The translations under genes and the position numbers were made by a program. A DNA stretch of 64,000 bases from Guillardia theta CCMP2712 (taxonomy: Eukaryota; Protista; Cryptophyta): contig NW_005434617.1 of assembly GCF_000315625.1 (NCBI RefSeq), positions 35,134-99,133 on the forward strand. Reading direction: 5' to 3'. The notes under the pieces are model-generated. The model ran no database searches. It was not told the origin of the DNA and saw nothing but the letters and a program-made list of their open reading frames with translations. Below are positions 10,135-17,229 of this stretch, piece after piece. Every line of letters begins with the position of its first letter. Positions within the stretch are counted from its first letter, which is position 1.

Positions 10135-10690
10135 TCACCCCCATAATGACCGTTACGAGAGGGGGTAGGGGTACTCCAGTCGTAGCAGGGACCGAAACGG
10201 TGGGGCCGTGGAGCGAGGGGTAGGGGTACATAGAAAGATAGGGGTACGGTATGGAGATATGACATCGGGGTGAGGTACATTGTTACTACTACCCTACCAT
10301 GAGGTTATGGTCGTGAGCAATAGGAAAGGGGTGGGGTAGTCAAACCCTTCAAAATTGGGAGCGTTAGGGTGGAAATAGTGGGTGGGGTAGTTGATGGCAG
10401 GAACTTTGGGGAGGAAATAGTGGGTGGGGTAGTTGATGACAGGGGGTAGTGCGGAAAGGGGTGAAATGACAACAGAAGACGGTTGTGACCATGGACCACG
10501 GGGAGGAGGTGGGGGTACTAGAGTAGGGGTAGGGGTTATTTTGGGGTCCATGGGTGTCAAGATGGTATTCACTGGGTGGGGGTCCATCTAAGGAACAAGA
10601 AACTGGGACATTTCGTGGGTAATCGACTGGATATTTGGGGGTGGAGGTCATCATGGAAGGGGTCTGCATCGGAAGTCGAACTTGGGGTCG
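10135..10690 (-). promoter_or_regulatory. Strand-biased GGGGTA/TACCCC tract upstream of the metacaspase-like gene
   Basis: Dense GGGGTA words directly upstream of the ATG at 10102. Includes a 26-bp direct repeat (10371-10396 and 10413-10438). Confidence 0.45.
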
Positions 10691-10704
10691 GCACGGACGA
10701 AACT

Positions 10705-10860
10705 TTAATAGATAAACGCCACGAATCTATCTACCACGGGTACTCTCCCTCATGATGTGACGGAATATGTGAATACCCTTCTGAACGACGAACTAAGTTT
10801 TCGCACAGAACTGCCGTCGTATGATTGAGAGCCGCGACTCTCCGTCATACAACGGCAGTT
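10705..10860 (-). ncRNA. Candidate Fanzor omegaRNA scaffold
   Basis: Four consecutive stems: 10809-10860 (16-bp stem plus 5-bp inner stem), ~10779-10808, 10738-10778 and ~10706-10735. G-U pairs form only on the minus strand. Located at the element 3' end downstream of the nuclease ORF. Confidence 0.7.
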
Positions 10861-11077
10861 GTTTTTTTTGCCAAATTGTCTTCGGATGTTGTTGGAGCCT
10901 TACATGAATCCTACCAAATGATGCCAGTCAGTCACTTCAATGATCACTGGCATGTCGTAAACATCGGATCATAATGGAGGCAGGCACCGGGCAGGCAGGC
11001 AGGCAGGGAATTAGGCATCGAGTCCCGAGGGACGCAGTCTGGGTAGGGAGGGGGCGACAACAATCATTGAATTCACC

Positions 11078-13152
11078 TCAGGGGCGACGTAGGTGATTCG
11101 GTCTTTCAGGAAACACATTGAAACAAGTGAGTATATTCAGTGCAGCATTCAAGTCCCTGGATTTGATCGGCTTTCCTTTACAGCTGTCACGATAACAGTT
11201 AGATGAAAAGGTGAATTACAGGAGTATACAAAACTTGACATTACCTCGATGATCTGCAAAATTTCAATCCTCGTACTTCACTTTTCCTTGTTTTCAACCT
11301 ACAGGTCTCGTCTGGTTCTTTCCCTGTATTTTCAATCCGTCGAAGCACATCGAGCTCAGAACCACAATCGTTACAGCACTTGGTAGTACGGTATTCGTCA
11401 ACATCTACGACTCTGTAGTGATTCTCGAATCTTCTTCTTATCCACCTGACCGGTACAGGCCTTTCTCCTCGACGTCCTGTAGACGGGAACCTTGCATTTC
11501 CATATGCGATAACAGGTTCTATTTCTCCCTTTCCTTTCATTGTACGGATAAACCTGTCGACTGACTTTCGTTTCGAAATGTAGATGTCGAATTTCATCCT
11601 GGCGTATTTTCGCTTTGAATAATGCGAAGTTAACTCCTCCCAATGACTTGTAACTGCAAGAAGATAGTCTTCGAATCTTGATAGACTGCCGCCAGACTTA
11701 CTCGAGAACCCCTTGAGATAGTGCAATGTCGATTGAATATCTTGATCCCACGTCTTTCTTTTCTTTTTATTGCGATTCAGATGTGACTCGTGATAATATT
11801 GTTTTCTCGAAAACTGAAATCTTTTTCTGATTATTTGTTGATCATCTCTGAATTGTTCGACGGCCGATATAATGACGCTCCTCCCAGGGTCGATCGCAAT
11901 TACCCTTGGGCAATTTTTACATTCTTCGATCTCTCTTTGGTATTCTGAATTTTCATGTAATACTTTGTATGATATTGATATCTTCTTCGCCGATTTCCGT
12001 TCAGCCCTTTTTCTATCGGCAAGCCATTTGGTAGTGCGCAATGAAGGTTCCTGTTCGAGTCATGGCATCGATTGTTTTGACAATTAACGTGAAGCGAAAA
12101 CAAACCGATACACCGTCTGTCGTGATACTTGTAATCTCCTCTCTCTGATCTCTGAACAGATTCGAACAGTCGAAAATCCTTCTGAAATTCTTAGAGTTCT
12201 CCAAAGTTTGATCTATTCTCATGAACGATTTTTTATCTTCTCCCGGTTTCAAACTGTTCGCTTCTTTCAAAATGTAATACATCACATCATTATCGATTGT
12301 TAGATGTTTTCTGCCGAATTTCGACATTGGTGCTGCCTTGAATGTTTTTTTCGAGAGACCACGATCTTCGAAGAACTTCAACATGAACATGTGTGTCTCG
12401 ATTATCTCAAACAGATTTATCTGCAACCTATGATCAAATTTGTCATATTTGAAACTAAAAAGATCTTCGTCCCCCGATAATCCAATTAGTTGTTTCATAT
12501 GGTCGATGAAGGTTCCTATCTGCTGTGAATTATTCCTGTTAAACACTTCTGTCTTCAACTCGTAATCTTTCCTTTGAAACAATACATTCTTCACGTCTCA
12601 GCGATTTCTTGCTGATGGTTAATATGTAACTCTCCTTTGCAGAATTCGGCAATGAACTTTTCCAATCGGTTTGTAAAATTTGCTTTCAGGTCTTGGTAGA
12701 AATTCGTTCCATATTGATTTGCAGCGAATACAATAGCTTGCGAGTCTCCTCGAATTCTACATAAATCAACGAAAAGATGTCTTTTCTCTGACCAGAAATG
12801 TTGTAGAGTTGGATACTTGTTATCTGTACGGCTATGTTGTTCCATTCCAAGTGTAAAAACATTCCAGAAAAAGGTCGATTTGGCTCTCTTGATTTCATCC
12901 ACTACATATCGTAAATTCCCTGTATCCCTGCCACCCCATATCAGAAAACAGTTGAATATCATACTGCCTCTTGATGTGATCTGACTGATATGTAATACCC
13001 ATCTGTCGATCACGTCTAAAATCGATCTGTTCTCTACCTTGAGTCTCGAGTATAACCCACCGTGATTTGACGACTCTCGTGAATGGTTTTGAATAACTTA
13101 TTTCTTGACCGTTGTCTGAATCATCTGTAATTCGTTTTCTCTTCCTCGGCAT
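11078..13152 (-). pseudogene. Fanzor1 RNA-guided endonuclease (TnpB/Cas12 superfamily), ~660-670 aa reconstructed, apparently frameshifted
   Basis: N-terminal NLS-like MPRKRKR; ITTDGVSVCF; RuvC-I VIAIDPG; AYGNARF; RuvC-II VDEYRTTKCCNDC; RGLKFC. After a GT-AG intron (11244-11184) comes SCKGKPIKSRDLNAALNIL...RPNHLRRP* (RuvC-III). Frame breaks near 13056, 12594 and ~12050-12090. Confidence 0.9.
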
Positions 13153-13379
13153 GTTATAGTATGTTAGTCTGGCGAAACCATGTTAGATAGCAGGTAGTCG
13201 CTACATTTTTTTCATTACCATCGTTTCAGTGTATTGTCGGACCGCAAACTCTGTAATGGCGGGAAGATGAAACGAGCAGCCACAAACTTTCCGTCGGACT
13301 CCGGGAAGGCGGGAAGATTTTTTTTTCTTTTTTAAGACCCTCATACAGCCCCATTGGATGGGTGTATCAATGACCCCTG

Positions 13380-14500
13380 TCATGCTGGTCCAGGACTCCT
13401 TCGGGAGTCCTTTTGTCGATTAAAGGTTAAGTCAGCGGCCCGCGCCCGGCGGCGGCGGCCGGGCACTGCCACGGTGATCGGACCCGGGCGGCCGGGCAGC
13501 GGTACTGAAGTTGCCAAGTTGACACTCAGACGTTGCGCCGCGGGGTCCGCGGCCGCCGATGCTCCGGGCGGTGTGCCAGGACGGTCGGACTGTGCAGTGC
13601 CGGCGCCGCGCGCGGCCCCGGGGGGCCGGGCCGCCGGGCGCCGCGCCGGCGGCGCGGGGCCGCAGTCCGAGCGTGACGGCCAGGGGCCGCCGCTGAGTGA
13701 AGCTCCGAGCCCGACCCGGTCAGTGGCGGACGCACTGAGTCTTTTCACTCAAACGGTTACTAGTTATGTACTTGAAAATCAGTACCGTACCGTACGAGGG
13801 CGCCTCCGTACCGTACTGATTTTTAACTTCACTTTGAGTAACTTAGAGTACCGTACCGTACCGTCACTGCCGCAGTGCCGCCGGCGTGATCGCCGGATCA
13901 TAGCAGGAGAGCCTGAGAGTCCCGGAGGCCTGCTGACTCGGGTGGCCCGGCGGCCAGTTGCCTCGGACAGTGGCCCACTGGCAGGCTGGGCCGCGCCCGG
14001 CCTGGCACTGTTTCCGAGTCCGGCGAGGCCGCCGCGACCGTCTGCAGTGAGCCTGGCAGCAGCCTGAGCCTCAGGCTGCTGCCAGCCGGCGGCTGTCACG
14101 CCGCGCGGTACGGTCACGGATCGGACCGGCCCGGTACGGTACTATATGCGCCGGGGCGCGCCCACCAGTGCCGGCCCACCGTGACGGTGCCTGCCGGCGC
14201 CGCCGCCAGCAGGGCCACCGGCCCGCCGGGCCGCCGGGCCACCGCCGGGGCGGCCGGGCGGAACTTGTTGAACAGGCTGATCCTGCCGACTGCTGTCCCC
14301 TCGTTGAAACTTAACTGATACCTTCACTCACCCCCGGCCCGGCGCCGCTGCGAGCTGAGTCACGGACTCCGGCCGGGCGGCTCCCGGTCCCGAGTCACCG
14401 GGCCGTCCGATCACAGGCTCAGCGAGCTGGCCCAGGCAGTGGGCCGCGGCCACCGTGACTGGCAGGCCGGGGACCGTCTCCGGGATATGTGTAACGGTGT
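13380..14500. other. GC-rich palindrome-dense intergenic island upstream of kinesin
   Basis: Very high GC with CCGG, GGCC, GAGTC and CCGTACCGTAC words and AT-rich insets. The ORFs here are spurious. Confidence 0.55.
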
Positions 14501-14527
14501 AACGGAGACCGTTGGGGTCAGTTGGAA

Positions 14528-17229
14528 ATGTCGGCTGCGAAGGCGCGGGTGAAGGTGGTGGTGCGATGCCGGCCGCGAGCAGGAGGAGGAGAGGAGGGAG
14601 ACGAGGGAGTCGTGAAGGTGATGGAAGAGCAGCAGGGACTGATCTCCATCCGAGCTGGAGGAGAGGAAGACGCCACAGAGCGAGAGTTTCTGTTCGATGA
14701 CGTCCTTGGTGAGAGGGTGGGGCAAGAGGAGGCGTTCGAGCGGAGCAGCAAGGCCATGGTTGACCATGTCCTGGAAGGCTTCAACGCTTGTCTCTTTGCC
14801 TACGGCCAGACTGGTTCGGGCAAGACCTATACCATCTTCGGGGAGGAGGGCAAGCCGGGGGTGGCAGTGCAGGCAGTGAAGCTGCTGTTCAGCAACATAG
14901 AGAAGAAGGCAGGGAAGCAGAAGACGCTGGTCTACGTCTCCTTCCTCGAGCTCTACCTCGACAAGATAAGAGATCTCGTCCAGATCAGCTCGGCGGACGG
15001 CGAGGTCAAAGTGGAAGGCAACCAAGGCAGCAGGCCCAACTCCCGCCCGGGAACGGCGTCGAGTCGTCGGAGCGACAAGCAGGGGGAGGGCCCAGTGGAC
15101 CTGGAGATCCGAGAGAACAAGAACGGTGGAGTCTACGTGCAAGACTTGCGGAGTGTGCTGGTGCACAACGTGGAGGATGTGCTGGCGTTGGTCAAGAACG
15201 GGCTGAACCACCGGCAGACCTACCAGACCTTGATGAACGAGCACTCGTCTCGCTCGCACACCATCCTCACGCTCACGGTTGTCTCCGAGAGCGGCCGAGG
15301 AGACGGAGAGACGATCAGCGGGAAGCTCAACCTGGTCGACTTGGCAGGCTGCGAGAGGCTGAAGAGGAGCGGAGCGGGCGACGAGAGCAGCGGCATCGAG
15401 GACGCCGGGCTGCGAGCCAAGGAGGCGGTGATCATCAACAAGAGCTTGAGCACGCTGGGAACGGTCGTGATGGCGCTGGCAAAGGGGGACGCGACTTACG
15501 TGCCGTACCGAGACTCGAAGCTGACGCGCCTGCTGCAAGACAGCCTCGGAGGCAACTCGTTCACTACTTTGATCGCCACCATCCACCCCCGAGCCGTCGA
15601 CGCCGAGGAGTCTCTCAACACGTTGCAGTTCGCCAACCGCTGCAAGAACGTGATCACGCAGCCTCACATCAACTACCTCGACGCCGACCCCGAGGGACAA
15701 GCGAGGATCATCGAGAAGCTGATGCGGGAGATCGCCGAGCTCAAAGACGAGCTTGCAGCACAGAAGGAGCACTACGAAGAGAAGCTGCAGCAGAGGGCAA
15801 GCATGGTGGGAAGCAGCATCGAGACGGCTGCGTCCGAGGTGGAGGACGGGAAGCATGTTGCAGGAGGAGAGCACGAGAAGGGAGAGGGGTCGAGAGGAAC
15901 CAGCCGAGGCTCCAAGCGAGCCCATACGGCCGACAAGCACAAGCCGGCGGCTGCTGTGTCGGACAATTATGTCAGCGCTCTGGCTGAAGCTCAGGTTAGA
16001 AGAGGATGGGAGGATGGGAGGGCGCGATAATGAGATTGTGATGGCAGGCGATGAGCAAGGAGATGAAGGAGAAGTTCGTGCGCAAGAACAACGAGTTTCG
16101 CGCTGCGCAGGAGGCGAGCAGGAAGAATGAGGAGCGCCTGAAACGGGAGATTGAAGACTACAGGCAGAAGCTCTTCAGCCTGCAGGAGGAGTCGAACTCC
16201 AAGGTGCAGAGCCTTGAGATGCAGCTTGAGAGTCAGCAGGCGAAGTTCGAGGGAGAGATCGAGCAGCTCAGCCAGAACAACTCGAGGCTGATCAACGACA
16301 TGGACGCGGCCCTGCGGTCGGTACCAGAGAAGCTGAAGCTCGACTCGGAGAAGCTGCGAGGGATGGACGCGACGATCCAGCAGGCTTCAGCGAAGAAAGA
16401 CGCAGAGCTGACGGAGGCCCTGAGGAAGGCGGCAGAGAACAGCGAGAAGATGCTTGGGCTGCAGCGGGAGCAGTACGAGTACTGGCTGAACAAGAAGAAC
16501 GAGGACCTTAAGAACTTTATCACAGAGTTCGAGGAGTACAAGACAGAGAGGACGGCGCAGGTGAACTCGCTAGAGAGCCATGCGCTCTACCTCTTCGACT
16601 ACTGCAACGCCCTCGCCACCGTCATCGCCAACTTCGAGAAGGGCCTCTACCCCGTCTACGAGAAGTCCGGCATCAAGGCCGTCCAGATCCCCCAGAAAGA
16701 CAAACCGCAGCTGATGAGCCCTGAGGTGCTGCGCGACCTGTCTAAGTACCGCAAGCGAGCCGACGACTTCATCAAGGCGCACCCGACAGGCCTCAACATC
16801 TCCTTCTCGGAGAAGAACCCTACTGGCAGCGCCGGGCCAGACTTGATCGCCTCCCCGACGGGAGAGGGGGAGGAGCAGGCGAACCGCCTGCGGCTCGAGG
16901 TCTCCTCGCTCAAGGAGAAGCTCGCGGCGACGGAGAGGAAGTCAGCGCAGACGGCCGACGAGCTGCGCGCGCAGATCGAGCAGCAGGTGCTGAGCGACCT
17001 CGCTGACCACCCGACTGTGGAGTACATCAAGCAGATCGAGGACGAGCGGAACTACTACAGGGAGCAGCTCCAGGAGGAGGTGAGGAGGTGTAAAGACCTG
17101 CGGATCGCCCTCGACTCGAAGCAGCGGGTGATCGAGAAGCAAACGGGCACCCTGGAAGCCATGAAGGGCTTTACCAGAAGCAACGTCAATGGCAGTAGAC
17201 TGCCCAGCGTCGTTGGCAGGTCTCGCTAG
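14528..17229 (+). CDS. Kinesin motor protein with C-terminal coiled coil (2 exons; intron 15995-16047)
   Basis: VVVRCRP, P-loop GQTGSGKT, switch I NEHSSRSH, switch II LVDLAGCE, YVPYRDSKLTRLLQDSLGG. A 53-nt GT-AG intron joins the two ORFs in frame. Confidence 0.95.

Follow-up and report, generated by a model that had tools for sequence, protein, structure and literature searches.

A Fanzor1 element of a family distinct from GtFz1 in the cryptophyte Guillardia theta

Results

A Fanzor1 gene in five pieces

The window, a 64,000-nucleotide stretch of contig NW_005434617.1 from Guillardia theta CCMP2712, carries on its minus strand five coding pieces that span positions 13152-11078. Piece A (13066-13152, residues 1-29) opens with the NLS-like sequence MPRKRKR, piece B (12603-13058) covers WED and REC sequence, and piece C (12067-12597) covers REC and WED sequence with the strand ITTDGVSV. 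Piece D (11245-12059) holds the RuvC-I aspartate D417 in the motif IAIDPG (11891-11889), an inert glycine, G547, the rearranged RuvC-II glutamate E582 in VDEYRTT (11396-11394) and the zinc finger, while the last exon (11078-11183) supplies the RuvC-III aspartate D642 in SRDLNAA (11155-11153) and the stop codon. The zinc-finger Cys pairs are CCNDC and CRSS/SC, the second of which is split by the break. A sequence-only reading of the window had proposed four minus-strand pieces and a hidden last exon, with this N-terminus, these catalytic residues and these Cys pairs, and all were recovered where it had placed them. It had also described an AT-rich island free of a transposase; the coding region is 39.7% GC compared with 55.4% across the window, and no transposase lies within the element.

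The sole protein identical to all of piece D is the 632-aa P0001 (residues 361-632, 100%), whose residues 1-29 are also identical to piece A. Two metagenome contigs, L001 and L002, carry the P0001 gene and are 98% identical to the window with gaps included; only three substitutions separate the window from both. Comparison with these sister copies showed that three of the four junctions between pieces are frameshift insertions, and that only the last is an intron. The first is a 4-nt insertion (13061-13064) missing from L001, L002 and the majority contigs of runs X1, X6 and X8, the second a net gain of 2 nt (12599-12601), and the third a 4-nt insertion (12062-12065) that 3 of 3 RNA reads lack; all three frameshifts are absent from the majority contigs of X1, X6 and X8. 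A 3-nt insertion in piece B, at about 12933-12935 relative to L001 and L002, stays in frame. Very short introns were ruled out as the cause of the first three breaks, which are 2-4 nt insertions relative to the intact sister. The pieces had earlier been joined into a protein of ~660-670 aa, a length that holds for the intact sister (666 aa when spliced). With three frameshifts the full protein cannot be made from the window copy, which is a pseudogene; the open frame is found in its sister copies.

The remaining break is a 61-nt GT-AG spliceosomal intron (11184-11244, minus strand) in phase 2, with a CTAAC branch-like motif, that lies within the second Cys pair, occurs in all copies and is spliced in two X8 contigs. 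Its splicing is required to reach RuvC-III, and its removal from the natural intact copy yields the 666-aa protein including D642. The nearest-relative loci with DNA are all intronless at the zinc finger, the splice point being empty in L003, L011, L012 and L014, so that this family has probably acquired the intron; Fanzors were already known to gain introns. A second GT-AG intron, of 166 nt (10911-11076, minus strand), begins 1 nt past the stop codon in the 3' UTR, and its joint is present in two X8 contigs.

Insertions are commoner than substitutions in the element, occurring at 13307, 13064, 12601, 12065 and 10951 in the window and at window-equivalent position 10759 in L001. Six of seven form short palindromes with a single central C on the left side or G on the right (P ~1.5e-4 against random letters, for a pattern set after inspection), and two come with a duplicated 2-3 nt site, as in TCC-C-GGA-G-TCC. 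They resemble what is left when the hairpin ends of a transposon with C...G termini are opened, or the product of fold-back end joining. The element sits at the edge of a 72% GC island (13431-14480) that contains 34 odd-centred palindromes with arms of at least 4 nt, compared with 8 in shuffled sequence, all of them centred on C or G; this island was probably made by the same insertion process.

Profile and fold place the protein among Fanzor1 nucleases

An exhaustive protein search returned 1489 relatives. A profile built from 82 full-length relatives retrieved exactly the three solved Fanzor1 proteins, namely SpuFz1 (E 6.5e-35), PpFz1 (7.9e-33) and GtFz1 (8.5e-26). When the pieces were compared with a profile of 81 relatives from which the query family was left out, they matched in order: piece B at 32-162 (E 1.2e-30), piece C at 188-324 (E 1.7e-24), piece D at 336-547 (E 8e-77) and the last exon at 550-581 (E 2.9e-13). 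As a sole query, piece D reached SpuFz1 at E 9e-7, PpFz1 at E 2e-6 and GtFz1 at E 0.29. An AlphaFold model of the intact sister P0001 (pLDDT 85.5, pTM 0.86) matched the folds of SpuFz1, PpFz1 and GtFz1 (E 1e-19 to 1e-15, TM 0.53-0.64), with SpuFz1 as the best match (E 2.4e-19, TM 0.62, 16% identity) and GtFz1 at E 2e-15 and 13% identity; Cas12 and Cas12f proteins ranked far below. The sequence-only reading had called for profile and structure searches against Fanzor1, TnpB and Cas12, and had made its assignment depend on a profile or fold match and on colinear pieces, all of which were found.

D417, G547, P563 and E582 are invariant in the family alignment. The RuvC triad is D417/E582/D642, with G547 at the canonical RuvC-II site and E582 placed 6-7 residues ahead of the zinc finger (C589/C592). 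A glycine at the canonical RuvC-II site together with a glutamate just ahead of the zinc finger is a Fanzor signature (PMC10530073; PMC13565253). The intact sister further shows a WED domain, an enlarged REC, a RuvC domain and a zinc finger within its 666 spliced residues, and as a mobile element the family is multi-copy, with differing flanks and target site duplications (TSDs). A Pfam search of the element returned only a weak TNB match. The profile, the colinear pieces and the fold support assignment of the locus as a Fanzor1 element from a family distinct from GtFz1; of the two options left standing earlier, a Fanzor1 copy or a distinct subfamily member, it is the second that holds.

Thousands of Fanzors are known, including intron-bearing and TTAA/TTAT-flanked members. 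Among proteins in the 0.55-1.75 length range, P0001 was the only member of its family found; a literature search that took in neither Repbase nor the Jiang et al. supplements found no paper on this Fanzor1 family, and no publication was found for study PRJEB17505. Within this scope the family is new, and the kind of element, Fanzor1, already known.

Ends, target duplications and copy number

The element extends from 13426 to 10709 (2.72 kb) between TTA(A/T) duplications, all features being given here on the minus strand. At the left are the TSD TTAA (13427-13430; TTAT in a sister copy), which is the predicted TAM, a piggyBac-like terminal repeat of 17 nt, CCTTTAATCGACAAAAG (13410-13426), and a subterminal DNA hairpin with 7-bp arms (13393-13410); at the right is the TSD TTAA (10705-10708). 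The flanks of four other copies (L001, with TTAT, L002, X6 and X8) diverge at the left edge, and those of L001/L002 and X8 diverge at the right. Repeat contigs of the DNA run X1 cover 10706-13426 with sharp edges, which means that bases 10705 and 13427 vary among copies, and hence that TTA(A/T) is found in one orientation at the two flanks, as a 4-bp target duplication. The bounds first proposed, a TTAA at either end of 10705-13335, were right at 10705-10708, but the left TTAA is 13427-13430 and not 13332-13335: sister copies align 95 nt further outward, and the TTAA at 13332 is internal. X1 depth was 645-991 over the element versus 48-59 over unique flanks, a rough figure of 11-17 copies, or about a dozen or more.

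At each of its ends, the relative on contig L011 carries this 17-nt repeat, with TTAT/TAA flanks. The window repeat matches the two L011 repeats at 14 and 16 of 17 positions, the right one (16/17) being the inverted copy, and the left ends agree at 31 of 38 nt from the TSD inward, with the hairpin kept. Because L011 has the repeat inverted at both ends, the left end in the window is a terminal inverted repeat (TIR). L011 1-2276 is itself a complete 2.27-kb Fanzor1 element that is intronless, encodes P0011 (670 aa, 29% identity) between its 17-nt TIRs and has just 73 nt from stop to right end, making it a clean assay candidate.

The left end (CCTTTA) fits the piggyBac terminal consensus C[CAT][CAT][TGA][TAG][TGA], and TTAT/ATAA are minor piggyBac target sites. 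The right end keeps an 8-nt repeat core with the outer CCTT replaced (TAGA-TAAACGCC), matching the left repeat at 8 of 17 positions, and in the sister family on L012 and L015 the core is likewise kept and CCTT replaced (TAGC-TAAACGAC). An offset alignment of the two ends through an internal TTAA (13/16) was dropped in favour of this in-register one, which three families support. PiggyBac excision depends on a terminal C/G, and the right end starts TAGA without a terminal C, so formal membership does not follow: the TTAA duplication is present here, and TIRs of 12-19 nt at both ends occur only in L011. The element nonetheless looks piggyBac-derived. Kolobok termini are purine-purine; although a TTAA duplication would suit that superfamily, the termini here are CC and TA, and it was rejected.

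No transposase was found inside the element, nor in or beside any locus examined. An autonomous partner would be expected to show CCTTTAATCGAC ends, and a search by end pattern gave chance matches only, including an archaeal eIF5A gene in a metagenome (L010) and a phage structural gene in a viral contig (L013). Some X6 and X8 contigs share part of the left-end region (13305-13430, 13362) and then continue into other DNA; these are rearranged copies or different elements that share this left end, possibly including the autonomous partner. No empty site occurred in any run examined or in the window. An X1 joint of 10388 to 13816 was rejected as one, having the wrong edges, a side of 22 nt and ends in a high-copy repeat. 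Nearby, a short inverted-repeat element (13716-13899) has an X1 depth of 26,000 versus ~60 for unique sequence, corresponding to some hundreds of copies.

A candidate omegaRNA and transcription on both strands

A structured 3' RNA had been anticipated from the sequence, and the last ~150 nt of the element contain the strongest fold anywhere in it. This candidate omegaRNA scaffold (10709-10860, minus strand) comprises four stem-loops and folds at -63.9 kcal/mol (z -6.85) in the sense direction versus -49.4 (z -4.75) in antisense. Its last stem closes on the final base of the element, the decayed right terminal repeat forming the 3' arm. X8 contigs cover the region; an Rfam search with it gave no match. 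The 3' end of L012 is also folded (z -4.9), and the short 3' end of L011 folds no better than shuffled sequence. One X8 contig that lacks 48 nt at 10841-10888, with non-canonical ends, has lost one arm of the long hairpin and represents a copy whose RNA scaffold is damaged.

In Fanzor1 elements the 5' duplication lies in the TAM, the 3' duplication in the scaffold, and the flank serves as guide. By this rule the TAM is predicted to be TTA(A/T), and the candidate guide to be the copy-specific host flank at 10704-10685 (minus strand), for which no second target was found within the 64-kb window. Upstream of the gene, two TTCCCGCC motifs (13258-13315, minus strand), which we take to be E2F-like, are a possible promoter; the L012 family has seven copies upstream.

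X8 contains the sense splices together with three plus-strand GT-AG joints, which define introns at 11127-11183, 11516-11583 and 11650-11887 within an antisense transcript region (11127-12795, plus strand). In X22 raw RNA, nearly all of the 121 reads have first mates on the plus strand, and some carry these joints; we read this signal as antisense transcription, from whichever copy of the family. No ORF of note was found on the spliced antisense transcripts. X8 contigs at 11301-11441 come from diverged sister copies that are expressed (8 differences in 147 nt), which indicates that older subfamilies exist.

Relatives and spread

The nearest sequences, at 29-32% identity over full length, are P0002 of Hanusia phi, L011 (P0011), L012 (P0166) and the giant-virus contigs L003, L004, L008 and L014. 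In a quick tree, P0001, P0002 and P0011 form a clade (SH-aLRT 98). Several relatives at ~30% identity are intronless and sit among giant-virus-type genes, a distribution consistent with transfer between cryptophytes and giant viruses in either direction; the giant-virus relatives examined have no terminal repeats of this kind. A search for related loci in viral and JGI metagenome contigs found no relatives. A second intronless Fanzor1 family, from the same metagenome study, is present on L012 (1099-3195) and L015. Its protein P0166 (642 aa, 32% identity) has an intact triad, and the element has a folded 3' end, a right end of ...CGTTTAGCTA+ATAA and the seven upstream TTCCCGCC motifs noted above.

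In the freshwater metagenome X6, the host sequence beside the element has diverged by 2-3% from the window, whereas no substitution was seen across 1255 nt of the element itself, which is present at 5-8 times the depth of its flanks; this identity reflects recent spread or homogenisation across strains. The element also occurs in other freshwater, runoff and lake metagenomes (X7, X9-X16), and the 97-98% identity of the X6 flanks to the window points to a close relative of the host alga in, or reaching, fresh water. The gene beside the element in the window, at 14522-16030 on the plus strand, is an ordinary host neighbour, a kinesin motor gene (PF00225, E 3e-96) that is 91% identical to that of Hanusia phi over residues 330-470.

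Comparison with known Fanzor1 systems

SpuFz1, carried by Spu-1 of Spizellomyces punctatus (Saito et al. 2023, PMC10432273; PDB 8GKH, 9CEU), shares the Fanzor1 fold, a length of about 630-670 aa, multiple copies without an internal transposase, the right-end position of the omegaRNA (here a candidate) and a TSD within the TAM (here predicted). The window element differs from it in sequence (16% identity), in a 4-bp TTA(A/T) rather than a TA duplication, in asymmetric 17-nt ends rather than 30-nt inverted repeats, in having introns, and in a candidate RNA of ~150 nt that lies 220 nt downstream of the stop.

With GtFz1, from Guillardia theta itself (PMC10432273, PMC11423790; PDB 9CER), the family shares the fold and a TTAA at the right end, and the TTAA(N) TAM of GtFz1 agrees with the TAM predicted here. 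GtFz1 is intronless, its RNA overlaps its last 17 codons, its two listed loci are without inverted repeats and, as we interpret the supplementary sequence, an IS630/Tc1-like transposase frame precedes it. The sequence-only reading held that a match to GtFz1 could not be judged from the window, and suggested an alignment. The comparison does decide the matter: the fold is the same, but 13% identity, a pairwise E of 0.29 and the canonical D642 where GtFz1 has N658 reject identity with GtFz1 (XP_005840014) and place the two in different families.

The insect-virus Fanzor1s HAgv-1, HAmv-1, PUgv-1, SFav-1 and HVav-1, and MCi-3 (Bao and Jurka 2013, PMC3627910), have 4-bp TTAA/TTAT duplications, short terminal repeats and Fanzor as the sole gene with no assigned transposase. 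They differ in host, in visibly different proteins and in symmetric 13 bp repeats, the ends being compared by description only. PiggyBac-associated Fanzors in Repbase are cited in PMC13565253. Both Fanzor1s flanked by TTAA/TTAT and Fanzors linked to piggyBac were known before.

Discussion

The family has a Fanzor1 fold with a complete triad, near-identical copies at different sites, an open majority frame and a spliced intron, and its copy in the window is broken. RNA binding, the TAM, cutting and the transposase are inferred. We consider it likely that this is a non-autonomous TTA(A/T) transposon, mobilised by a transposase in trans, in which the Fanzor1-omegaRNA complex of intact copies restores the element at emptied sites. 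Intact copies would produce the 666-aa nuclear protein, which would bind an RNA of ~150 nt transcribed through the right end with 15-20 nt of flank. The complex would recognise TTA(A/T), the left duplication, as its TAM and cut the empty sites left by excision, whereupon repair from the sister chromatid would restore the element. Movement itself would be supplied by a TTAA-targeting, piggyBac-type transposase, and the broken window copy may still donate its guide in trans, as SpuFz1 ghost loci do. In Fanzor1 the TSD is part of the TAM. We count against this proposal the TAGA right end, the absence of a transposase from the loci examined and of an empty site from the runs, raw RNA reads that appear mostly antisense and the inactivity of CrFNuc, an intron-bearing algal Fanzor1 that showed no cleavage in vitro.

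That this family and the one on L012 and L015 both keep the repeat core at the right end and have lost CCTT could mean that the terminal hairpin of the omegaRNA overwrote the right repeat and that piggyBac-type movement was lost, with spread then due to another TTAA recombinase or to Fanzor cutting followed by copy-in repair; the near-identity of the copies, unsubstituted in X6 despite the divergence of the host flanks, would suit such a route. Yet the left repeat is intact, imperfect repeats are not unusual (as in Pokey), homing alone makes no new sites, and 4-base duplications whose variable last base agrees between the two ends speak for staggered cutting by a transposase, so we regard this alternative as doubtful. 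Similarly doubtful is the more elaborate possibility that, in two families, the hairpin replaced the bases cut by the transposase while copies went on reaching new TTA(A/T) sites and remained identical between diverged strains, that the Fanzor complex or an unrecognised recombinase sets the right end, and that introns and antisense RNA control the nuclease.

It is more improbable still that the Fanzor gene is a silenced or nuclease-dead passenger, amplified recently by a transposase and cutting nothing in its host. The spliced antisense transcripts over RuvC, the CrFNuc precedent and broken copies such as that in the window would fit, but the majority sequence keeps an intact triad and zinc finger, sense transcripts undergo splicing, and of seven changes listed for one diverged expressed copy four are synonymous and a further two conservative, although these numbers are small. 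Least probable, and touching only the state of this copy, is that the frameshifts are assembly errors and the window locus intact: the window-specific insertions occur in none of the examined runs, but Logan contigs remove bubbles and so lose minority repeat variants, such that the reads neither support nor contradict them, and the form of the insertions (2-9 nt, all outside homopolymers, mostly C- or G-centred palindromes, with a comparable one separating L001 from L002) argues that they are real.

The window copy is dead as a gene, and intact sister copies exist elsewhere. The alga that supplied GtFz1 holds a second, unrelated Fanzor1 family, which could go straight into a TAM screen: it has a natural intact sister, testable as a genome-editing nuclease, its ends are mapped, its TAM is predicted to be TTA(A/T), and it has a 150-nt candidate RNA. 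The family could also be used to study the mutual constraint between piggyBac-type ends and omegaRNA structure. Young, multi-copy and transcribed in a culturable host, it offers a system in which the role of a Fanzor in its own genome, such as the cutting of empty sites, may be addressed.
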